Source of the DNA: Zygnema circumcarinatum SAG 698-1b
Taxonomy: Eukaryota > Plantae > Zygnematophyceae
Direction: 5' to 3'
Length of the DNA stretch: 64,000 bases
NCBI GenBank assembly: GCA_037447605.1
Contig: CM074809.1
Coordinates: 3,152,689 to 3,216,688 of the forward strand
Below the pieces are notes generated by a model that was not told the DNA's origin, ran no database searches, and worked only from the letters and a program-made list of their open reading frames with translations. This document shows, one piece after another, positions 2,989 to 49,936 of the stretch (position 1 is its first letter; every line of letters starts with the position of its first letter). Both the position numbers and the translations under genes were made by a program.

Positions 2989-3825
2989 ACCTCTCACCTG
3001 CAAAATGCGCAAAAGCCATATTGGACCTGCATTTTGCAGAAGACGCAAGTTCATGTGGACTGATCTTCCAACTTTCACTTTTCACTGCACTTTGCGTCAA
3101 CGCGCCTGTTGCAGTTCTATCTCACTGTGCTACTTCTTAACAAAAGATAACTGAGAGAAGAATTAGCGGTTGGCATCATGGGTTTGCAACACATGTTCAA
3201 GGTTGAAAAAGTAAATATTCACCGTCAGCTTAAAGCTTTGCCGTAACTCTTCAATCGATGCGATTTCTGGACGTTTCCCAAAACCTGCTATCTGTAGTCT
3301 CCTGCAAGAGGGGGAAAATGTGGCAGAGTTCAGCCCACCCCTTCTTTGGCCTTCACAGCAGTTCCTGCGATAAAATTATCACAGCGCAAAATCAATCATG
3401 CCCTAACTACCATAGACCAGAAATTAGGCACATATTAATTAAAAAAAAATACCAAATTTGCAGAACAATAGCAGCACCAGCAGCCAGCTCCAGTACTAGC
3501 GCCCAGGTACGCAGTTACACGGCAAAGACGACCGAAAAGACAGAAGAATCTCTCAAAATCTCGAGCTGTTTTCCAGAATTGCGAGGTTTCACAGCCACTG
3601 CAAGAGCGGCGACAGGACGAAGCTAGCCCCCCCTCTCACCAGAGACAGAAATCCATCCTCACCTCTCAGCAGCCCGCTCCCGCCAGGCGCTCCTGAGCAC
3701 CGCCCTGCCCAGCGCCGCCATGCTCTCCCTCCCTCCAGCTGCAGCCTCTCTCTCTCTCTCTCGCTGCCAGGGCCTGCCAGGCCGCGCGTGCGAGGTTCGA
3801 GCGTGCGAGCCCGCGCCCTCCTCGT

Positions 3826-3970
3826 GCCAAGTGGCGAAGCGCTCGAGTGCCACATGGCACGCCCGTGACGTGGCCCACGGCGCTTGCAGTCGCGTGACAT
3901 GGCACGCGCCCATGCAGAGGAGTGCGCCACGTGGCACGTGTGCATGCAGAACAGGGCGCCACGTGGCACA
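3826..3970. promoter_or_regulatory. Cluster of G-box/ABRE elements in the divergent promoter of the LEA-like gene and the pseudouridine synthase
   Basis: GCCACGTGGC at 3926-3935 and 3958-3967, CACGTG at 3935-3940, TGACGTGGC at 3866-3874, plus near-matches GCCAAGTGGC and GCCACATGGC, all within about 145 bp. Confidence 0.6.
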
Positions 3971-4443
3971 AAAAAACCAGACCAAAATGAGTATCGCGCA
4001 AGTCAGGGGAAAGCGTTGGATCAACCATTGGAAACGCTCGGTACCCGGCCAACGATTGGCAATTGGATTGTTTTGTTGGCAACCATTGGCAATGGTTGCC
4101 AAAGTTCAATGGTTGCTAGCCATTCGATGGATTCGATGGTTGCGAACCATTTCATTCGCGAAGGCCTCGCCATCGTGAGTTCAATGAAATTTTCCCCCCA
4201 TTTCATTCGCGAAGCGTTTTCTGATAGAAAGGTCACGTGTTTGCGAGGCTACAAAGCTTCTAAAAAAGGAAAATTGAAGGGGAAATTTGGGTGCAAGGGT
4301 TGTTGGGAATTTTGTTTTGTGAGTTATGCAAAAACCAATTGGTCGATGGTCCCTTAGGGCGCCCAGGCCTTCGATAAAGTCACAGTAGGTGAAAGCTTGG
4401 CTTTGAAGGTGAGCCGCAAGGACGGAGGAGACAGTGGGAGGTG

Positions 4444-7400
4444 ATGTGCGCTCTTATGGCGGTGAAGGCTGGGCGAGCTTTTGATGTTTTTAGGGCTTGC
4501 AGCGCATACGATCTGAAGAGTATCGCTGTGGTCGGCACTTGGCAAAGGATGCATTTCCATCTCAGAGATAGGGACTTAGCGTTCCTTCAAGCAGGCTGCA
4601 AGCGATCGTCAAACTCTCCTGCTTTCCTTCACGAGAGCGCTTTTATAGGGGATATCTGCGCACCTGCGATAAGGCACACAGCGAAGCGGAAGATACTTGC
4701 TGAATTGTCTCCGAGTAGAAGGTAGTCTTCACGCATGCCCTCTAGTGAAACCATAAAACCACTTGAGGCGAGCAATGTGGAAAGCATCTTCTTGCGTTTG
4801 AGAGGTTCCTTTGAATGGAGTGCAGGGGGACCCTTTCACAAGAGCTGACCTCATTTCAAGTCGTGATTGCATTTCTCTTGTCTTGCAGCTCTTTCAAGTA
4901 TTCAAGGCTTTCTCCAAGTGGCATTGTCCAGCTACCTCCACGCGTCGAGCACTTGATTCTGGATAGGCGGGGGCTGGCAGTTGACGTCCTTTCAACAATG
5001 TTGGATTTGCCAAGCGAGTGTGTATATCCAACCGCATGTGCATTGCTCTATTTACTGATCGTCTTCATGAATGCAAAATATTTGATTTGATTGTTTTTGT
5101 TGTAAATACGTCTTTCTGAGTACTCGCATGCGTTTATTTCCAGGTATGTTGAAGATCTTATTAGGTTCGGCGCAGTTTATTACTCGCCAATCCCTCCGCC
5201 TCCTCCGGCTCATGCTGGAGCTCACATCCATGCTGCCTACAAAGCATTACCAGAATCTCCTCTTCTGGCTGCGGCATTAGCCAGAAAACGGGTCAGGAAA
5301 GGTGATCCTTCGTGATTATTCTCGTTCGTGATTATTTGTTCAAGCAAGTATGTGGAGGAACCGTAGTTAATTTTTTTTTGAACCGACACTATATGTATTG
5401 GAAGTGGTGGTAAGAAACAAGGGAGAACACGGGATAGTAATGACGAATGTTGTTGATGATGTTGTGAATTGCTTGTTTGAGCACGTGGCCACCTTGTTTT
5501 CAGGTTTGGTTCACCATTGAGGAGAGAGCTGACCTAGGGATCTTCTTGCAACACTCAGTCTCACAGAAAGGAGGGCGCATTCCCGTGTCAGTAGACTCCC
5601 TCGGTGAAGGGTTACATCCTATTATGAAGCCAACATTGGGGCAGAAGCCACAAAGGGTGAAATCCCTCGACTTGAAGGTCGAGGCTGGTGGCTATGTCCG
5701 CGTTCATGTGAACCCTAAGCGATTTCCTGGGTATGAGTGAGGTGATCTTATGGCCCTTAGTTTTTCAGAATTTCAATGCCCTTCTGCGTATGCATTCCCA
5801 TCCTGGCTTGTTGAAGTTTTTTCAGTATTCAGCTACTGAAGATGATGTGAACCCAATCATCAATAGTTTGCAGTGATGAGTCTGGTGGTTGTGGGTACGA
5901 TGCAAGAACTTGGATTGGAAGGATGCTTGTGACAAACAGCCCATATCGTTTCGTGCATGCAGGTGCTACAGCGTTGATTGGGCATCCACATTGTTGGTGA
6001 ATACATCAGATTATGTTGTCATTAACAAGCCTGCAGGAATTCCAGTAGGTGATTTTCCCGGATATCCTTCATGTCAACGGAAGGTTAATCATCCACTCAT
6101 TGGATGAAAGTGCATACAACCTATGTCTTGAGATTATTGAAGTATTCATCGAAGGACATTCTTTCCCTTGTTCCTTTCGTTAGCCTGAGGTTGTTTCACT
6201 TTTTCTTGACAGGTAGGGGGAACAGTTGACAATCAGGTGGAGAATTGCATTTCCTTTGCTGCAAGGGCAGTAGGGTTGACGGAGCCCTTATGGCCCACTC
6301 ATCAGCTGGACACATGTACGCAGGGCTGGTAAGAATTGAACGCCCTCGCGCATTTTTTGCCTTTTCTTTGCAACTTTTCTGGAGAAAAACGAAGTGTCAA
6401 AATGTCTTTGTCGGCTGAACCCTATGTCCCGTTTGAACCAACGGTGCAGTATGGTAAACCCTGCAAGTAGAGAAACTAGACCAGAGCCAGACCAGCTAAT
6501 AGAGCTTTGCTGCAATGCAACACAACAGATACCGATAGACACAGTACCAATCCTCTGTCAACTCTGTTTGGTCAGGGCTTGAATTCTTTTTTGTGGCGGT
6601 GCTACTTGGCAGTGTGGTATTGGCCAAAACGAAATCCTTTGCTGGACACTTCAACTCGCTGATGCGAGTGAGTCATTAGCCTCTCAACCCCTCCATTACT
6701 GCTTCCTGACCTTGAAGGCCGGGCGCCTGAGAATGAATTTTGCCCATGTATCTGCTTCGTGCTGCTCTGTCCACTTCAAGTGAAGTATTGGATATGTTGT
6801 CCCCCTTTCTCTCGTCTCTCCAACTTTCATTCTCGTCGCCCCTCATCTGTAATCTCATCTCTGTTATCTCTCATTTGTTGTTGTTTGTACTTTTTCTTCT
6901 CCGCCCCTTGTCCCCTCCCCCTCCCCTCGCCGCCCCCCTCCTTTACGTCAATAGTACCTGACTCTATAAGTAATCCGATAACTGAGAGCAAGTAGCCAAA
7001 TCTAGGATTCAAACATGGCAGAAGATGGTTTCTGACGAGAGAAAGTTGCTCCATTGATGGCAGATTGCCTTATGCTGATCCAGAAAGTATGCAATGCCTG
7101 CCTTCAGGAGCGTAAAGTGAACAAGGCCTACCGTGCTCTGACGACATCACCCATAAATCCGGGGCGTTTAGTGCACTTCATGCGGCCAGGAAACTATGCC
7201 CCAAGAGTTGTCAGACAAGGTATGCTGCTGCTTTTTTGCCCATGTCCTTGGGAACCAATGTTTTGCAGATAATCTTCCGGAGTCTTGAATGGTTATTTAT
7301 TATAGACTACACATGATTTTCGAAATTCATCACCACGTACATTCACTCAGATTTTCGGGCTCTTGTCGGTTCTTTGTCAGTTCTTGGATGATCATTGGAA

Positions 7401-31031: not shown

Positions 31032-33228
31032 TCAGTGCAGAAGTAGGGGCACCCATTCCTTCTCTTCGTCTGTTTCTAGTGGAGTCCAGCCAAGCTCATC
31101 TCGGATGGCTTCTAGCCGACCTCGATTCTTCGGACCTACAAAAGAAGGAACACAACCTGAATAGTAAGTATCCTCAAACATAGTAACGACTAGTGAGCAG
31201 AAATAGACATATACAGACATATATAGTGGGGCGTATTGGGCACTCTGGCTATTTAAAAGTGAACAGATATCAGGCATGAACCTGAGTTACCATTCTTTTA
31301 AAGGCGTGTCAGGAGGCAACTAAGCTCTAACCCCGGCCCATAGGAGCACTCAGCTGTTGCTTTTCACACGTCTAGCCTCTGCTCGAGTGCAAGCAAGGCT
31401 TATTCTTAATTGCATCGCCCTGGACATCAGCACTCACCGTTGATGCAACCTTTCCACCAGCAGAATGGAGGGTCTGGGACTTCTTTACGGGACACCGAGC
31501 GAAAGCAAACTATGCGTCCCCTCTGCAAACCTCCCACGACATTGTCTTGTGAAATTTTGTTCGCTACTCATAAATCACCCGTCCCGCGACCTCACAAGCT
31601 TGGCAGCTTCCATCTGCTGCACTTTGCTATTGAACCTGACCTCCGAGTAAGAACGAGTGACAACACATGATGATCAATATTTGTCAGAAAAGACGCGCCC
31701 TCTCTCGGCCTCTCGCTGGCATCCAAACTGCCCACAGAAAGCTAGTGCAAGAGTGACAGTATGAACCACTCACGCTGAACAGGAATTCCAAATCATCAGT
31801 GTCAGCCGGCCCATTATACTCAAGTGCAGCGTATATATACTTTTCTCCATCTTCTGCAAGGACCTGCCCACCCTGTTTCACCGTTCACCCAAGTCCATAC
31901 CATCAATATCACCATCACGGACCAGTCCTTGGCCCAGCTTGCAATCAATTTGGAGTCTCCAAACACGCACATGAAATGCTGCAACGAGAACACGCCTTAG
32001 TGAACGTTGAACGAGTAAGGAAACGAGTGTGACAAGTGCTTTACGTGCCTTAAGCTAAAATTCAACAATTTTGTAGTTGGCCGTCGCTCAATTTTAACAG
32101 TGAAACATTGGATACTAAGTTCTAAGGAAAAAAAAAAAAAACTTTCAGGCTTACATTCTCAACCGGTTTGACTTCCTTTGTGGCAAGCCTTATCACAATA
32201 TCTTAGACGTTGTACAGGAAAATCACCATGCGGATGAGAGTGGTGCGGAGACTCGTATATGCGACCTTCTGATCTCCAAAATACTGCAAAACCTCGTTCC
32301 CTTATGATTTGATTAGACCTCCCAAACTGTGAACATGTTTAGTGAGCAATGCATGCCGGTGCGGCTGCAGCCCATCACCTAGATAGTCACGACAAACTGA
32401 GCGCGAAACTGCCTGCAATCGCAATGCATCACCCTTTGGCGCTTGATTCTGCTGCAGTGAACATGGGCAGGAAGTACATTAAAAAAAAACCGCTACTTGA
32501 TTCTGCTGCAGTGAACATGGGCAGGAAGTACATTAAAAAAAAAACCGCTTCTGTACGTGTTTTTCTGGTGCATTTTGGTGGTTACATCATGAGTTCAGTT
32601 CAACATCATCAGTTCTGGCACCAAAAAAAGCCACTTATTGACGAACTCGTACCGTCCAGGGTGCCATGAAACGGCTTGGGCTCTGAAATGCAGAGGTTGA
32701 CACGCATGGGCTACTTCCAGAGCAGCCACGAAGCTTTCCCTTCACAAGGCCAGTGGTACCTTCTGCAGAAAAATTGCCCTTAGAGTTGTCTGCGATTAGA
32801 AATAATTCGTCCGTAGAGTTGCTTGATCGTCGACCAGATAAATCATTACCTCTACCAGATAATAGCGATTCATCCGAAGTTGCATGATATACTTGAGTTT
32901 CCTCAACTGCATGCGCGTGATGAACATCTAGCGGTGCTACAAAGAGCAACAGTCCGAGAATGGGCGAAACACAACGAGCGTGCGATGCGATATCTTCTTC
33001 AACTCGAGTATCTTCTTTGTTACAAGCCTTTATGTGAGTTTGTACGACAGACTGCCGCCTTATGCTCCATGCGATTGAGGAGCTTAAAGTGGAATGAACT
33101 GGCAGCGCCAAGCACGGAGAGAGAGGACCCTTTCCTCCCGCAAGATGAGAAAGCCATGGCGGAAAGGCTGACTGCAACAGCCCCGCATTGGGGCTCAGCC
33201 AAGCGAGGCAGCAGGCGGCAGCAGGCAT
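31032..33228 (-). CDS. DUF1499 family protein, probably plastid/thylakoid-targeted; 5 exons
   Basis: Bipartite-like N-terminus (transit region, then hydrophobic LGLLLFVAP..AHA). This is followed by LRGCSGSSPCVSTSAF..PW, KYIYA, TDDLEFLF, IVCFRSVSR, PPFC..GCINGPKNRGRLEAIRDELGW, as expected for DUF1499. Confidence 0.8.
32442..32549. repeat. Near-perfect tandem duplication (~54 bp x2) in an intron
   Basis: CTTGATTCTGCTGCAGTGAACATGGGCAGGAAGTACATT(A)9-10CCGCT occurs twice in tandem. Confidence 0.9.
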
Positions 33229-34226
33229 AGCGCTGAAACCCTCTCTAAGGAGGAGAGCCCGTCGTCTTCAATGGTCGGGCATCCCCCAATGGCGGTCCGC
33301 CACGTTTGCAAATTCGATGAGGTGGCGCGTCGCCATTGGACGACGCCCACCGTCAAAATTTGCAATGGAGAAGGGTCCGCCCAGGTGCCTTTTAGAAAGG
33401 TCATATTTATGGCTCCTCTCTCTGTACTCTCTCATCATAAGAAGGGCTCTTCTTCGCTTCTTGTAGCTCTTGCAGTCTCCGCCATCATCCAAGTCTTCAA
33501 TGAATGCTGTTTCTGCCGAGCGGCAGACTGTCCAAGAGTAATGTTTCTTGACAGTATTCGATCGGCCGGCCAGTCAATATTGGTGGATGACTGAGCACAA
33601 CTGAAGAAAAGTTGAGCCTCAAGGGGCCACAGGACCCATCCATAGGCACATGCGCATGATACGGTAATCCAGCAGTGCTTAACAGAGGTTGGTTTTTCTC
33701 GTTCAAACCATACGCAAGATGCATAACGAGCACATCTCAGTGCAGTCGCCTTCCATTCGTTCTAAATGTGCGCAGTTTTCACTTTCGAACAAGTGAGCAA
33801 TTGCGCCATGTGCTTTGCTCACTCTGGTCCTATGTTGATATTGGATGTCTGGAGAAAGGTAGTAAAGAAGAAGGGGGGCCTTGGAGAGGCATGGCACTTG
33901 TAATTTGTAAGCGATGTCCAAAGCTTCCGTGACCAACCATTGTTGTTGCAATGAAACAATTTTTCAATTCTGCGGTGGATTCAGGTAGCAAAGAGCGAAG
34001 GAGCAAGGAGCAAGAAAGCTAGGGGAATTGCACCACCCGTTTGCATGTAAAGGGAATAACCTGTTTCAAATTGAAGTCGATGGACACCATTTCTATTATG
34101 TCTCAAATCCTTGTTCAATATGTCCAGATATGCAGTGTCTGTCAGAGAATGTGGTCACACTGAAGCAGCACTGGCCGATCATCTCAGATCAATGTAAGCT
34201 GAAGGAAACACCCTCGCACATTTAAG

Positions 34227-34274
34227 CGTAATGAAAAACGATTCTTGTGTTCGTAATGAAAAACGATTCTTGTG
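34227..34274. repeat. 25-bp tandem duplication
   Basis: CGTAATGAAAAACGATTCTTGTG(TT) occurs twice in tandem. Confidence 0.85.
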
Positions 34275-34780
34275 CATCAAACACAAGAACAAATGTGCCA
34301 ATTACATCAGAAGTCTTGGAATAGACTGCAAAACCTTGAAATTCATCGACTGCTCGAAATAAAAAACTCATGTCAAGCACCTCTCAAGGCTCTTGTTGCC
34401 AAAGGCAAAGGAGGAAACATTGAATCCAAAAAATGATTTCAGCAATGAAACGGATGAGCAGCAGACTAAGGAGGCTTTTATTTGAAAGAAGTACAAAAAC
34501 TATTTGAACGTACAAAATGTCTGCAGTATGTGAGCCGAATGACCTCCAAACATCGAATTATCAAAAAAGGTTCCAAAAAACTATACAAAAAAAAAAAAAT
34601 TGCGAGGAAAAACACTACGAAAACTCTATGTAGGACACAGTCCAATAGCAGCCCTGCAAGAAGTCATAGTCTCCAGTGTCCGTACTGGAATCTACCTACT
34701 GCTGCGCATCTTACTGGTCCTTTTTCCGATTTCCTTTATCTTGCCTCGTCCAACCGGGGATTCAAATGTTTCAAGACCCC

Positions 34781-35866
34781 TCACTGTCCTCTCTCCGTGC
34801 TATCCTCAACATTTGCATCATAGCCGGGGTACTTCTTCCACTTCTTGTGCTTCTTCCACCCATAGCCATCATCCCGCTCCTGACTCTCATCTGCCATTCC
34901 CTCACTGTCCACTCCCTCCGTGCTATCCTCAACATTTGCATCATAGCCGGGGTACTTCTTCCACTTCTTGTGCTTCTTGTGCTTCTTCCACCCATAGCCA
35001 TCATCCAGCTCCTGACTGCCATCTACCAACCCCTCACTGTCCTCTCTCTCCGTGCTATCCTCAACATTTGCATCATAGCCGGGGTACTTCTTCCACTTCT
35101 TGTGCTTCTTGTGCTTCTTCCACCCATAGCCATCATCCAGCTCCTGACTCCCATCTGCCAGCCCCTCACTGTCCTCTCTCTCCGTGCTATCCTCAACATT
35201 TGCATCATAGCCGGGGTACTTCTTCCACTTCTTGTGCTTCCTGTGCTTCTTCCACCCATAGCCATCCTCCAGCTCCTGACTCCCATCTGCCAGCCCCTCA
35301 CTGTCCTCTCTCTCCGTGCTATCCTCAACATTTGCATCATAGCCGGGGTACTTCTTCCACTTCTTGTACTTCTTGTGCTTCTTCCACCCATAGCCATCAT
35401 CCAGCTCCTGACTGCCATCTACCAACCCCTCACTGTCCTCTCTCTCCGTGCTATCCTCAACATTTGCATCATAGCCGGGGTACTTCTTCCACTTCTTGTG
35501 CTTCTTGTGCTTCTTCCACCCATAGCCATCCTCCAGCTCCTGACTCCCATCTGCCAGCCCCTCACTGTCCTCTCTCTCCGTGCTATCCTCAACATTTGCA
35601 TCATAGCCGGGGTACTTCTTCCACTTCTTGTGTTTCTTCCACCCATAGCCATCGCTCCAAAAGCTGTCCTGGTTACCGCCTCCTCCATCTTCTCTGGCAA
35701 AACCGGTTGCAACATCGCGTCCACTTGTTCCATCCAGGACAGCCGCATGACCGCTGCCATCATCCGCGGGAGCCATGCGTGCGGAAGCCAGCCATGTTCC
35801 CCACACTAGCGCAAACCCTAACACTGCAAGCGCTCGCAGAGCCGAGAGGCCATTGAACTTTCCCAT
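34781..35866 (-). CDS. Secreted tandem-repeat protein / putative multi-copy cationic peptide precursor (361 aa, intronless)
   Basis: ATG start and a signal peptide (LRALAVLGFALVWGTWLASA|R), then an acidic/Gly pro-region and 7 cores GYGWKK(HKK)1-2WKKYPGY separated by DANVEDSTEREDSEGLxDGSQELxD. The repeat unit is 132 bp, and TATAAAT lies about 85 bp upstream. Confidence 0.85.
   Translation of the reverse strand: MGKFNGLSALRALAVLGFALVWGTWLASARMAPADDGSGHAAVLDGTSGRDVATGFAREDGGGGNQDSFWSDGYGWKKHKKWKKYPGYDANVEDSTEREDSEGLADGSQELEDGYGWKKHKKHKKWKKYPGYDANVEDSTEREDSEGLVDGSQELDDGYGWKKHKKYKKWKKYPGYDANVEDSTEREDSEGLADGSQELEDGYGWKKHRKHKKWKKYPGYDANVEDSTEREDSEGLADGSQELDDGYGWKKHKKHKKWKKYPGYDANVEDSTEREDSEGLVDGSQELDDGYGWKKHKKHKKWKKYPGYDANVEDSTEGVDSEGMADESQERDDGYGWKKHKKWKKYPGYDANVEDSTERGQ
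34785..35652. repeat. Coding tandem repeat, 132-bp unit, about 6.6 copies
   Basis: Near-identical units; the first and last cores lack one 9-bp HKK triplet. Confidence 0.95.
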
Positions 35867-35948
35867 TAATCCGAATCCCCTCCCTTTGCAGCCAGACCTC
35901 TTCCAAGCTCACCAGCTAAATCCTGCTTTAGGCTCTTCGGCCCATGAA

Positions 35949-35955
35949 ATTTATA
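35949..35955 (-). promoter_or_regulatory. TATA box of the repeat-precursor gene
   Basis: TATAAAT on the minus strand, about 85 bp upstream of the ATG at 35866. Confidence 0.55.
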
Positions 35956-37699
35956 GCTTGCCTACCAGCTCTTCTAACACTTGGTCAAAGTTTGACCGCC
36001 ATGCAAGACACCGCCTCCGTAGCTTTCGTGTCCCCCGAACTCTGACATGCAGCCCCTTGCTTTAACCGCGTTTTCCAATGCAATCTATGGCTTGCCTCGC
36101 TCACCGTCAACACACGGTCAAAGTTGGACACCATCCACCAGACTGCCTTCGCTGCTTTCGTGTCTACGTTGACCCGCTGCATGGCTTTGCATGGCTGCGT
36201 CCCGGTCGAGTCGACCCTCACCAACGATGCCATTGACAGTCTCCTGCAATCCATGGCTGCTATGCAGCAATGCTCCGGGGACAAGCCCAGTGTTGGATAA
36301 ATGGTCAAAGTCAGACCGCAGCTTTCTTCAGTAACCGCATGGCTTCGCACTGGTCCAACCTCGGTAACTCCTTTGCAGCAATGGCGGCGACAGCCTCCCT
36401 GTCTTCCCAGCCCATCCAATCCCAGCCCATGCAACACCTTCACCTGGGCCTCTCCGTCACTCTGAGAGCAGAGGGCCTCCGTGGTCAAAGCCTCCTCCAG
36501 ACGACATCGCCGTCCTTGAAAGCTCAGCAAGCTTTGAAGAGTACTACAAAGCTTGAGCTCTTTCGCTTCCATGACTCCATCTCCCTCACAGAATGAGGTA
36601 TGAAATTTTGACGGTTTAAGTTGGGCCAGACGAGGCAGCAGACGCGCTGCCAATCTGAACCTCGCCAGATCTTCCCTTCACGCTGCTGTTGATGGGTGTC
36701 TTGAATCGATATCGTCAAACGGTATCCAAAAGCGCCCCCAATTATCGTGTAGGATAGCACAATGTGAAGGCTCCTGGTGAAAAAACGCCAATGGTCATGA
36801 ATGTATAATGTGTTATAGAATTTAATGTTCTCATGCCAATGTTCAACAAGGTGTAGATTATCGTACAGGGAAGATGTGGCATTGATCTCACGATGGCGAT
36901 GATGCCATCAGATGCACATGGACAAAATCATCAGCATGGGGAACCACGACAAACTAACTGGTTGCAAAGGACATAAGCACAAAAGAAAAATGATAGGAGC
37001 GACGATCTACGCCTACGCGCAACAACGCAGCATAGTACACAATTTCATGTTCACTCCATGTGTTGCACAAATTTACGACAAGTACCATAAAACGGCGACA
37101 ACAAACCGTTTCCACGGAGCTTGGAACGGAACTGGAAGAGTTTCTGCACAGCACGCAGCGTGTTCCACGCGTGCGATGTCGATTGGCGCACAAGATACGC
37201 AGTCAACGTGATTCCCACGAATCCCGCGATCTCCAGCAATTCACATGCCAGTCAACGGAGGCACTCCGCCAATCGGTTGCTGCCACGTGCCCTAATTTGG
37301 CGACTTTCGTCGCTTCGTTTGTCGGCTACTGTTTATCGTAACATCGTCGACATATCGGATACGACCGGCGAAATCTGCCGCCACCGGCCGTCAAAAACCT
37401 TAGCGCTTAACCAACGCGTTTGCCGGCCGGCGGCAAACTTCTCGCGGGCGCCTGCCGATACGCCGGTGATGCGGCGGGAAACAGTAGCGCCCCCAAACGA
37501 CAAATTCCCCGCCCGGCCTTTCGTTTCCGTCCTGATTAACTGTCCAGCTGTATTACGAAATGGCGACTCCTGACTGGCCAAAAGGTACACGTTTGTCGGG
37601 CAGGGAAAGAGGTGCTTTCTGGGCGGTGTTACCTGTCACTATCTCCCCGAAATCCACACCCTCAGTTTGAACCTCGTGGCGAATCCATTTTGGCAGATT

Positions 37700-38114: not shown

Positions 38115-38673
38115 ATGTCGGGCCGTGGAAAGAGCTCTGGCAAGAAGGCAGTTTCGCGCTCAGCAAAGGCGGGACTGCAGTTCCCTGTTGGTCGTATAGC
38201 GCGGTTCTTAAAGGCTGGCAAGTACGCGACGCGTGTTGGAGCGGGGGCGCCTGTGTATCTTGCTGCTGTTCTAGAGTACCTTGCCGCGGAGGTATTCGCT
38301 TTTATTAACCCTTTTCGAGTTATAATCATATGAATAGATCTGTTGAACTTTTGCATTATCAAATTGAAGTTTCCTTTCTCCCTGGAAACACTTGGAGGAT
38401 GGTGTGTCTATATTGTTCTTACTAAGTTGTGAGCGTTTGCTGTGTTTTTGCTGTCAGGTTCTTGAGCTCGCCGGTAACGCTGCCCGTGACAATAAGAAGA
38501 CCAGGATAGTCCCTCGGCATGTCCAACTTGCTGTCCGAAATGACGAGGAGCTCAGTAAGCTGTTGGGACAAGTAACAATTGCTTCTGGTGGTGTTCTGCC
38601 AAACATTCACTCCATTCTCTTGCCCAAAAAGTCAGGCGGCTCCGGTGCAGCTGCATCAGCAGCAGCGGAGTAG
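38115..38673 (+). CDS. H2A: Histone H2A (canonical-type); exons 38115-38291 and 38458-38673
   Basis: [52 protein letters not shown]|[52 protein letters not shown]. There is no SQEF (H2A.X) or KSPKK (H2A.W) tail. Confidence 0.98.
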
Positions 38674-39461: not shown

Positions 39462-40424
39462 TAATCTACAGAAGTGGCGTTGCCATGCATGTGACTAGAA
39501 AGGGGGCTGCTAAGATCCAGACTGACAGTCCCACCGTCCTCCAGCACCTGTGAACTGGTGGTTTCAGTTTTACATCATTAGCTCGGAGGCCCCCGAAAGC
39601 CTGCACAGACGGTTGGCGATGTAAAACGGAAAGGTAAAATACATCACTTACAATACATAAACTCCTCAACCTGTACACCTACAAAAACTTCCTCATATTC
39701 AACTCTCATTCTTGTCTCCAGAAAAAAATTGACGTAGTTAAAATTGTTACAACCAAAAGGCCCGCTAGTTGCCCGTTTGTCATGGCCGACTTCCATGAGT
39801 AGACTAAAATATGGCGGGCCAGCACTATCCCATCTTCGACCACAGAGCGATGAGGAAGCTCCTGCTTTCCAGAAAAAGAACGGAGCCAAATGTCTGCAGG
39901 AAAAATACGCAAGGAGCGTCCTGAAACGTTTTTCACAAACTGTTTTAAGATATCAACGCTTTTGGACTCGGAACTGCAGCGAGCCAAATGAAAGCAAAAC
40001 AGATGCAGCAGATGTGCTGAACTTTTCTCGTACCGCGCAGGTTGTGAAAGATTCTCTTTCAGAAACAGCCCTTCCTCCTTCCTTCCGCCAGTCTTTCATC
40101 CTTTCCCTCTACAAGAAATGGCTTCATACCAAAAGCAAAGGCCGTGTACTTACTGGGAATGGAAAGTATGATAAGTGTAGTCCACGTCATGATCATCGCC
40201 GGGAGCAGCGTGAGGACAGAAGCAACGATAGCCACAGCTGCCACCTGACTCCCTAAAAATAGAGTTTTTCCAGCTTCCATCCATGGAGTCACACTCTCAT
40301 TATACATGCGAGGATGCCGTAGCGTTGCGAGATAGGCGACAGATGAAATTGTCCACAAACAGCATACAGCCAGAGAAAGGCCCACAGATAAAGCCAAAAA
40401 TTTGCAAGAAACCTCAATCCACAT
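39462..40424 (-). CDS. Small uncharacterised membrane protein
   Basis: Hydrophobic exon (LALSVGLSLAVCCLWTISSVAYLA...VAAVAIVASVLTLLPAMIMTWTTLIILSIP) splices to IWLRSFSGKQELPHRSVVEDG..GQLAGLL. From memory it resembles a plant family with a VTWITVLVLLAFAGKPRR motif. The last exon and the start are uncertain. Confidence 0.5.
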
Positions 40425-46546: not shown

Positions 46547-47380
46547 GGGAGTACTTTTCAGGAGCCCTGTTTAGGTGGGAGGGAGTGACCAGCATGGTGT
46601 TTCAGCAGTCCTCTGTGTGAAATAGAATAAAGGGAGGCCAGACTGTGCTGGGTGGGAGTAGGAGGTTGGGAGTTGAAACAACTAGGTGAAATGGGAATAG
46701 TTAGGTCGACATCTCTTTCTGTGATTGGGTTGCATTCGCCATGCAATAAAAAAATTGCAGTTTTCTGCATTCAGAAACTGGAACTGGAAACCTGATTTTA
46801 GGTTTTGATTATTGTTGCTTTCGGGTTTGCACTGAAAGATGGGTTTGGTGTAATGGCTTTGACTTTTAACTGTAAAAGTAAAAAACATGGACCAAATATG
46901 AGTGCGCAGATTGAGGTCTACGCACCCTATAAACGTGAATAACCAGGAAGCCCTAAAATACCAAAAACTGCTACAAAACCGTTTTTAAAATTATGCTCTG
47001 AATTCTGAAAGCGCACCAAAAAACTCTAACATCCTCAGAGATCACATATAAAAAAAAACGGGCAGCACCCACGGTGAAGCTCATGCATTAATTTGAAACC
47101 ATTGCATTTAAAAAAACAGTATATTATAATTATCTTGCTTTAAGAAAAAAGTAAAATATGTAATCTTTTTCCGATACACCAAAAACATTTTTACAGTACT
47201 TCTTGACAGAAATCAGATCTCTGCATCAAGTCCCTATGGTCCATCAAAACGGAAAGATTGTACGCTGCCAAATTAGTTCGCCACGGAAAATTTGGCGCCA
47301 GAGTAGTCAATTTTTATTTATAAGCAAATTTGAAAACAGCACATGCCAAAAAAATACAAAGCTCCTTCCTTCTTGGTAAA

Positions 47381-47586
47381 GTCAAGGGCCAATCTCTTCG
47401 GATTTTGGTGAGGTCCCGGGACCAATCTCTTGCCATTTTGGCAGACTCATGGGCCCAACCTCGTGCGATTTTGGGGTCAAGGGTCAAACTCTTACGAGCT
47501 TGGTAAAGACAGGGGCCAATCTTTAAGTCGAGGGCCAGGGTCTGTTGCAGTATTGGTAGAGTCAAGGGCCAACCGCTTGCGATTTC
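47381..47586. repeat. Degenerate ~32-bp minisatellite (consensus about GTCAAGGGCCAATCTCTTGCGATTTTGGTAGA), about 6-7 units
   Basis: GTCAAGGGCCAA-like cores recur at about 47381, 47413, 47445, 47476, 47508, 47527 and 47561. Confidence 0.65.
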
Positions 47587-47622
47587 GCCCTTCCTTCCTT
47601 CAAAAAATTTAAGGCATCAACT

Positions 47623-49936
47623 TCACCACCTCCTCCCAAGAATCCGTTTCCCTCTCACGTTGGCTGCCACCTGCCGCTTGTTCAGCTCCTTGGCATCCTC
47701 CGTGATCTCGTCAATCACCTTCTCTTGCCTGTTTTGGGCACACCAACAGCCAATAGTCCCACAACCCTAATCAGTCAAATGTGCACGAAGCAAGCAGGGG
47801 CAGGATCCGAACCTGAAGAACACTGCCAGCCACTCTGTGTGTGTGAGAGTGAGAGAGAGAGAGAGAGGAAGAAAGAGAGCGAGCGAGAGAGAGAGAGAGA
47901 TTCGCACAGTAACGAAACCACACACAAAAGAAAGTTAAGAGATGAAAGGTGAAGGACTCACTTCTCCATCTCCCGTCCCATGTCGAGCGCCATCTTTTTC
48001 AAGTCCGTCAGGTTGGCGCTGACTGCATCCAAAATGTCATCCTGCTCGTCCTGTTCTGCCTGTCACATACAAAGACACACAAAAGAAAACGGAGAATAAT
48101 CCATCAGTTGCTTCTTTCCTCTGTTTCTTCCTTAGTCCCTCGGGGGGCTCCCCACTCTCGACCTCCAAAACTTTCAAGCTGCATGCACAAACAACTAGCA
48201 AAAGAACTGAAGAAGTGGTTACGTTCGATATGAACAGAGTGCAGAAATTTGAATGCGAGATGCTGCAATGTGAGCTTGCATGTTATGCATTTGCTCAGAC
48301 TTACTGAAAGTCGTTAGGTTGTCGATCAATGAGTAGAGATTATGCCATACAAAACACTCGATTCACGCGCCTCACGAATCCAGGAACTATCTACTCCAAT
48401 AATGATTCGCTTAACGTTCAAATTAGGAGATAGTGTAAGTCAAATACCGTTGCTGCCCTCCTTAATTTATTTCTTCACTAGCTGAGTATAGATGACCCAA
48501 CTTTACTAACCAATCTCCATCCTTTTTCTCCTCCTCACTTACGATGCTCATGTATCTCATTGCTCCAACTCCGATCTATCTTCTCTAGAACTAAACCAAA
48601 GATAAAAGAGGTAAAAATACACCATTTTTTTCATTGCTTATCCAAAGTGAGGTCTAACTTGCAACAAGCAATTTACAAGCTCTCACCTCCACTTGGTCCT
48701 GCCAGCCGTCAGCATCACCAGCTGTTCGTTGAGCCCTCTCCCCCTTCAAACCGAGCTCACCGCGGGAAGAAGGGTCTCCCGAGTAGGAAGATGGGTCATC
48801 TGCACACGCTCTAAGAACAAAAAAAAATATTCAATAAAACAGTCCGCAGCATTGCTTGAAGCTATACAATCCAAATACGGGGTGTGGGGGGGGGGGGGGG
48901 GGNNNNNNNNNNGGGGGGGGGGGGGGGGGGGGGGGGGGGGAAGGAAGGGGGAGAGAGAGGGAGAGAGAAAGCAAGCGAAAGGGAGACGGGTGCACGAGAT
49001 AGACATGGAGAAGCAAAGGAGTATCGTACCACCAGGACGATAATCCGACCCTGTGATTTTCTTTCCCTTCTTCGGCTTCCATCCAAATGAGAACATAGGC
49101 CCTAATCTTCCCAACAACTTCTCTCCCTGCAGAACGAGGGCAAGATACACAACCACTGAACCAATTCAATTCAAGCCACCATATCTCCATGATCCAAATT
49201 CAAACGAGAATGCTTGTCCCTTACCAATACATTTCACTCACAGTCTTGGAATGCGAAGCGGGCCGATTGAGCATGTTCACATAATGTACGAACCCAAAAA
49301 AAACGTATACAATTCACGCATATCGCGGTCCCAGCGAAGCAGGCAAGGGAAAAAAAGAAGGGGGAACCGTTCTCCTGCTCCGCTTCAGAACTTGAGAAAA
49401 AGGTGCTTTCCAACAAATACCCATTACCGAAATCGCATCAAAAGATGTGCTCGTTGTACCTTGGCCAGCTCCTGGTCGACCTGCACAACCTTCTCGTGCG
49501 TCCTCGAGAGCTGCTCCCCCTGCTCGTGCAGAGTCACTAAAGTCTGAGCCCCAATTTTTTTCGTATCCTCCGAAATCTTCAAAGCGTGCCTCAAATCGCT
49601 CGTCACTTCCTTCGACTTCTTCACCGCCAGCTGCTCCAACTCCCTCTGCTCCGCCCGCATCAGCGGATTATCTGACCTTGAATCGTACTCATAGGCCTCC
49701 GCAGTAACCCTAGAACGGCTGTATTGGTCCAAGGGATCGTACCCATTGTTCGGCTTTTCGGCTTCCACAGCGGCTTGCGCGGCTGCATGGCGGGCCTTGG
49801 CTTTGGGGACTCGCGGCTGTCCCCCGGTGACTCCCAGAAGCTCCGCGCGGGACCTCTCCTCCCTCTTCTCAGGGACGCGGTAGCGGCTCGTCAGCGCGCC
49901 GTCGTCGCCGTCCATCACCACCGGCAGGCGGCTCAT
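47623..49936 (-). CDS. SNAP25-homologous Qbc-SNARE (SNAP33/SNAP29-like); 5 exons
   Basis: Qb motif ELEQLAVKKSKEVTSDLRHALKISEDTKKIGAQTLVTLHEQGEQLSRTHEKVVQVDQELAKGEKLLGRLG, then WKPKK, and Qc motif QDDILDAVSANLTDLKKMALDMGREME.QEKVIDEI..AANVRGKRIL. No transmembrane anchor. Confidence 0.92.
48903..48912. other. Assembly gap (10 N) inside an intronic poly-G tract
   Basis: Run of N flanked by G homopolymers in a SNARE intron. Confidence 0.95.

Follow-up and report, generated by a model that had tools for sequence, protein, structure and literature searches.

What does Zygnema, a green alga of fresh water and a near relative of land plants, make from a gene that alternates strongly basic and strongly acidic segments? 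We focused on a single-exon open reading frame (positions 34781–35866, minus strand) in a 64,000-nucleotide stretch of Z. circumcarinatum SAG 698-1b DNA, hereafter the window. The window contains introns and plant-type genes, including those for an acylamino-acid-releasing enzyme, isoamylase, a SNARE and histone H2A. The frame is intron-less, free of stops and encodes 361 amino acids. A sequence-only reading had proposed that its product is cut into several cationic peptides.

Briefly, the protein consists of an N-terminal signal, a leader, seven basic cores and the acidic spacers between them, all encoded on the minus strand. The predicted signal peptide (aa 1–29; 35780–35866) is hydrophobic at about aa 9–24, where hydropathy reaches 2.2, and carries an A-x-A motif at aa 27–29 ahead of the cut. 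In a single-sequence AlphaFold2 model of the full protein (pLDDT 47), the sole confident helix was this signal, at aa 7–29, and the remainder was disordered. Hydropathy and predicted helix therefore support the signal peptide of the sequence-only reading. The hydrophobic N-terminus is predicted to act as an export signal, and the protein would enter the secretory pathway. After the A-x-A site comes a 43-aa Gly/acidic leader (35651–35779), the first half of which is apparently common to a paralogue. Core 1 has 16 residues (35603–35650, aa 73–88). Cores 2 to 6 have 19 residues each and lie at 35471–35527 (aa 114–132), 35339–35395 (aa 158–176, a His to Tyr variant), 35207–35263 (aa 202–220, a Lys to Arg variant), 35075–35131 (aa 246–264) and 34943–34999 (aa 290–308). 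Core 7 again has 16 residues (34820–34867, aa 334–349). Six inter-core spacers fall within 34868–35602, each with 25 residues, 11 Asp or Glu and one Arg. A 12-aa follower, which is a truncated spacer, then leads to the stop (34781–34819). The translation thus holds the five 19-mers, two 16-mers, both variants, pro-segment and spacers as previously listed. The 19-mer contains 8 Lys, 3 Gly and 2 His. The cores lack Asp, Glu, Asn and Cys, and the mature chain is free of Cys. Beyond the coding region, a putative TATA-like box (35950–35955) lies about 85 nt above the ATG. A T-rich 3' untranslated region, defined by contigs and with no open reading frame above 80 aa, spans 34155–34780 and possibly continues to about 33385.

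The coding DNA repeats a 132-nt unit in tandem, with 6.0 copies and 96% matches. The 16-mer cores are 19-mers minus one 9-nt triplet, and the loss of 2 nt from a GA run in the last spacer ends the frame. The seven copies derive from one recent unit. Hence, seven matches count as about one observation. Variants among the copies have a synonymous to non-synonymous ratio of 4:9 (p 0.16–0.42 versus neutrality), and purifying selection among the copies was not detected from them. Both changes in the cores (His to Tyr and Lys to Arg) are conservative, while the spacers have seven amino-acid changes, some of them non-conservative. This difference is suggestive only.

Transcription was assessed using sequencing runs. 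Six runs from three studies contained 64–77% of the region's sampled words. We aligned contigs of three RNA-type runs, from three studies, to the window; contigs tell neither strand nor level. In all three runs, contigs of the neighbouring gene end at 32653, exactly before a GT donor, and then continue elsewhere. Intergenic stretches, for example 37062–37643, have no contigs. Hence, the runs behave as RNA. The neighbour is itself a transcribed, spliced gene on the minus strand; its first exon (32653–33233, donor GT at 32652) encodes a transit-peptide-like N-terminus with no Pfam match, and the neighbour starts about 150 nt beyond the furthest reach of the repeat gene's long 3' region. For the repeat gene, contigs with at most one difference covered the 3' flank across the stop, parts of the repeats, the leader and the 5' flank. 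On the 3' side they ran from 34155, 34315 or 34414 to 34818, with further pieces at 33385–34169. Contigs in the repeats were collapsed and had higher depth. In the follower region, contigs from three studies matched with no gap at the site of the 2-nt loss. We conclude that the locus is transcribed and that the terminal frameshift is genuine rather than an artefact of assembly. Expression, which the sequence-only reading had left to be confirmed, is thus borne out over gene and flanks in three studies, by strand-blind contigs. These runs are of laboratory type, with no known microbial challenge. One further run gave no contigs anywhere, the neighbouring gene included, and this blank has no meaning for expression.

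Two plus-strand frames across the repeat locus are also open. The minus strand is favoured because the ATG, signal peptide, TATA-like box and T-rich downstream region all align there. The start site is not fixed, since lower-depth RNA contigs cross the region upstream of the TATA-like box that carries the W-boxes described below. Further upstream, an element of about 65 nt (36868–36933) lies under dozens of unrelated contigs, whose summed depth is very high in each of the three runs. It is a dispersed repeat that many transcripts contain.

Next, relatives were sought. Neither word-indexed searches with the full protein or aa 1–176, nor exact look-up, returned any. Pfam gave only noise below the cut-off, PDB sequences gave no match, and the gene had no match in DNA collections of metagenomes, prokaryote genomes and viruses. 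Short core words had no match in a literature search or in the parts of Zygnema proteomics supplements that were covered. The core sequence, unrecognised at the outset, hence remains without known relatives in these protein, Pfam, DNA and literature searches. In the ESM Atlas nothing was found at 0.9, and matches below 0.9 are leads only. The best look-alikes, all weak, came from streptophytes and were repeat proteins of the wall type: early nodulin-75 (0.78) and a gp1-like protein (0.77). A full HMMER scan of 1.84 billion representatives gave a single match, Euglena gracilis EP00667_P000538 (E 3.6e-08, 29% identity), which scored only 29 bits in BLASTP. We rejected this protein as a homologue. 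It is 1389 aa long, has no N-terminal signal and no Trp/Tyr triplets, and indicates compositional convergence. Its roughly ten alternating poly-Glu and basic repeats have a period similar to that of the algal protein. As a control, a neighbouring open reading frame (40062–40424, minus strand; 121 aa with two hydrophobic stretches) was searched, and it too had no homologue in the protein collection. Hence, the databases probably hold no close kin, and the orphan status of the repeat gene is provisional. The control frame may itself not be a gene.

The contigs also gave a hint of a paralogue. Contigs of each of the three RNA-type runs are interrupted at one and the same 30-mer, within the signal peptide (35791–35820). 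One run has a contig that matches 35709–35820 with 7 differences in 112 nt (94%) and then diverges for 53 nt. One listed difference, at 35747, is synonymous. The simplest reading is a paralogue that shares signal and leader, since contigs on either side in that run agree exactly with the window. From these contigs, a leader-sharing paralogue apparently exists; there is no second copy inside the 64-kb window. A conserved leader with a variable core is the pattern of peptide precursor families.

Upstream of the gene, a motif count with shuffles identified six TTGACC sites, the W-box consensus, at 35983–36490 (minus strand). Four of the six read CTTTGACC in gene orientation and are 133–187 nt apart. 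The nearest upstream W-box makes an inverted pair around 35990. The six sites occupy 506 nt above the TATA-like box, compared with 0.27 expected in 600 nt from the rest of the window, where the best cluster has three. None of 5000 dinucleotide shuffles of the upstream segment attained six, and the motif is the top over-represented hexamer, heptamer and octamer of that segment. With 33 sites placed at random, six fell within 510 nt in 2 of 10,000 trials. The sites are not all independent. A degenerate 92-nt direct duplicate (35941–36164; 73%) carries one W-box per copy, and at least two copies arose by local duplication. Counted as three or four independent sites, the cluster has p 0.002 or 0.0001, respectively. 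Flanks are mostly 20–40% alike, but three copies agree at 60–70% over the ten bases upstream.

The TTGAC core is WRKY-specific and conserved to Marchantia (PMC12142463). Like WRKY-regulated genes, this one has TTGAC(C/T) sites clustered in its proximal promoter. The cluster therefore suggests control of a stress or defence type, putatively by WRKY factors. W-boxes also serve abiotic stress and development. This, and the origin of at least two copies by local duplication, weakens the interpretation. Other motifs were noted in the window. The same upstream 600 nt contain five RY-like CATGCA/TGCATG sites, a number that 1.3% of windows reach. A second cluster, with every site on the minus strand, lies at 47305–47778 and comprises six TTGAC(C/T) sites, of which four read TTGACT. 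Dense ACGTG/CACGTG (ABRE/G-box-like) sites occur at 3651–4500, with up to nine in 600 nt. About 2.2 kb upstream of the repeat-gene ATG lies a two-exon histone H2A gene (38117–38673, plus strand) with a Gly/Ala/Ser-rich tail.

The charges of core and spacer are closely matched. A 19-mer core carries +8 at pH 7, from Lys, +9.5 at pH 5.5 and +10 with His protonated. The spacer carries −10. Hence, one core plus one spacer sums to −0.1 at pH 5.5 and −1.8 at pH 7, in agreement with the earlier proposal that the spacer can neutralise the core. The net charge of the mature chain is −15 at pH 7. Charge segregation within one unit is high (kappa 0.38) and was attained by 3 of 5000 shuffles of that unit. 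The hydrophobic moment of the core has its maximum at 120 degrees, with 0.40 for the core and 0.61 for the triplet run, as a result of the triplet pattern. At 100 degrees it is 0.11, which does not suit an amphipathic α-helix. Such a core suits a polyproline-II chain, which would have three residues per turn and Trp, His and Tyr on one face. With a mean hydrophobicity of −0.47, the core is very hydrophilic and hence poor for membrane insertion.

How might the cores be released? In silico, cutting after every Asp gives intact cores plus one Asp as the sole long products. This outcome follows from the block design. Asp does stand directly before and after all seven cores, as the sequence-only reading emphasised, but as an argument for cleavage it is weak. 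A maximal acid-free run is necessarily bounded by Asp or Glu, and the chance of Asp rather than Glu on both sides is about 0.27. A motif scan of the protein found no dibasic KR/RR, RXL, RRxL or Asp-Tyr. No protease or tailoring enzyme was seen among the long open reading frames of the window.

We compared the protein with known systems. The Ib-AMP precursor has a signal, six basic domains of 20 aa and acidic propeptides of 16–35 aa (PMC10136942). Like it, the algal protein has a signal peptide and several basic cores of about 20 aa, containing Trp, Tyr, Gly and Pro, with acidic propeptides between them. The layout likened earlier to that of Impatiens balsamina Ib-AMP thus holds, but the CCx8Cx3C pattern is absent. 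Ib-AMPs have four Cys and use Arg, whereas the algal cores are Cys-free, rely on Lys and His, show triplet periodicity and have no sequence homology to them. Shepherins of Capsella bursa-pastoris are Cys-free, His/Gly-containing peptides from one secreted precursor (PMC4695807). However, they are rich in Gly and His, and a dipeptide linker joins their two cores, while the algal protein has seven Lys-dominated cores and long acidic spacers. Sorghum Siliplant1 and diatom silaffins are likewise secreted and disordered, with seven Lys-rich repeats and acidic parts. Of the silaffin-like layout suggested previously, the Lys-rich repeats, signal and acidic parts stand. The RXL site of silaffins is absent. 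The algal basic block is also not Pro- or Ser-rich, and the protein is net acidic rather than basic, with no homology. With RALF22 and extensin-type pectin binders it shares a secreted cationic segment that could in principle neutralise homogalacturonan. Unlike them, it has no Cys, RRxL or Ser-Pro repeats, and it has a multi-core layout. The Gly start and Asn/Asp end of AEP-cyclised plant RiPPs (cyclotides, PawS) are found in the algal core when it is cut in silico after Asp, in part as expected by chance, but the follower is Ala-Asn and lacks the ligase-type bulky hydrophobic P2' residue. No BURP domain, as in moroidin-type burpitides, occurs in the protein or in 52 long open reading frames of the window. 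The Ser-Pro runs, Pro-rich repeats and Tyr-x-Tyr of extensins, proline-rich wall proteins and ENOD2 are missing, with no Pfam match above the cut-off. So is the Asp-Tyr dipeptide of Tyr-sulfated hormones (PSK, PSY, RGF). Because defining features are missing, we rejected membership in the Ib-AMP, shepherin, silaffin/Slp1, extensin, RALF, sulfated-peptide and AEP-cyclised families. The multi-core architecture is already known. The core, charge match, W-box cluster and algal setting appear undescribed.

Our best reading, a tentative one made by analogy, is a stress-induced, secreted, Ib-AMP-like multi-core precursor of Cys-free defence polycations. The gene, its transcription, the layout, the charge balance and the motif cluster stand as observations, whereas secretion, WRKY control, cleavage and activity are parts of the model. 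The main rival, nearly as likely, is that the protein serves, whole or trimmed, as a polyelectrolyte of wall or mucilage. Such a block polyampholyte might condense in acidic secretory vesicles. After release, by analogy, the basic blocks might leave the spacer and bind de-esterified homogalacturonan or mucilage instead, which they would compact or glue. Peroxidase crosslinks through Tyr, Trp and Lys could possibly fix the protein during stress. Charge blockiness, neutrality near pH 5–5.5 and disorder all agree with this, as do a triplet periodicity like that of polyproline-II wall proteins and the weak Atlas look-alikes. Consistent with charge-driven assembly, cationic RALF22 binds and compacts homogalacturonan (10.1101/2023.08.23.554416). 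Against it, neither Ser-Pro or Tyr-x-Tyr nor any glycosylation motif occurs in the protein, Pro accounts for only 8 of 332 aa, and the uncut mature chain, at −15, would be a poor pectin binder. It is improbable that the frame is a young, repeat-expanded, transcribed one lacking a selected peptide function, or that the true product is a hydrophobic plus-strand frame (34676–35809). The absence of homologues, copies 96% alike with neutral-looking substitutions, open plus-strand frames and strand-blind contigs would allow this. However, the W-boxes join the other gene-like features aligned on the minus strand, charge blockiness is strong, a paralogue is apparent, and orphan status means little when the control frame is also blank.

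Binding of metal or mineral is quite improbable. In this reading, the His/Lys cores and Asp/Glu/Ser spacers would act at the cell surface, either as chelators of Cu, Zn or Fe or as nucleators of silica, phosphate or carbonate. His at i and i+3 and 13 S-x-E sites, candidates for phosphorylation, point this way, as do Lys-rich repeats in a secreted disordered protein, of which Slp1 has seven (10.1101/518332). Conversely, RXL is missing, the core is neither Pro- nor Ser-rich, and each core has one or two His, one of which is replaced by Tyr in one copy. Zygnema is also not known to silicify. Very improbable is a precursor of modified peptides, made by head-to-tail AEP cyclisation of the Gly to Asp core or by Trp-His/Tyr crosslinks at i, i+3. 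Cut after Asp, the core would run from Gly to Asp, like those of cyclotides, and its W-x-x-H equals the Trp5-His8 spacing of moroidin (PMC11253845); the Ala-Asn follower, however, does not offer the bulky P2' residue that AEP ligases prefer.

Several observations support the multi-core defence precursor. The layout, with seven cores of 16–19 aa and 25-aa spacers, resembles that of Ib-AMP. The unit is close to neutral at pH 5.5, and the after-Asp digest yields whole cores. Substitutions in the cores retain the aromatic/basic pattern, and the moment peaks at 120 degrees. The W-box cluster fits defence, and the 94%-identical contig fits a conserved leader with a variable core. Conversely, the limited weight of the Asp flanks, the neutral-looking 4:9 variants and the hydrophilic core weaken this reading, and transcription in laboratory-type runs with no known microbial challenge weakens its defence aspect.

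If the precursor reading is correct, WRKY factors would induce the gene via the upstream W-boxes upon stress or contact with microbes. The signal peptide would direct the precursor to the secretory pathway, where the spacer would mask the core, so that the unit would have no net charge near pH 5.5 and do no harm on its way. An Asp-directed protease, perhaps a phytaspase-type subtilase or AEP/legumain, would then cut within the spacers. The freed 17–20-mers would be extended, polyproline-II-like polycations with Trp, His and Tyr on one face. These may bind anionic microbial surfaces or intracellular polyanions, in the manner of histatins or shepherins rather than of pore-forming helices. In fresh water, which is low in salt, electrostatic binding of this kind would be favoured. 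It is more doubtful that Asp-directed proteases release Cys-free polyproline-II polycations for inducible defence or wall sealing in a system that predates the antimicrobial peptides of land plants or arose in parallel with them.

Our limited literature search turned up no account of multi-copy defence peptides released by processing in streptophyte algae. Being short and free of Cys, the core is easily synthesised, and existing Z. circumcarinatum proteomics (PXD060327) could reveal junction peptides. The self-neutralising design of core and spacer, with a pH switch near 5.5, is relevant to coacervate and adhesive chemistry. If a W-box-driven precursor is indeed encoded, the gene would provide a test of whether WRKY-to-peptide immunity, or peptide–pectin wall assembly, predates land plants.
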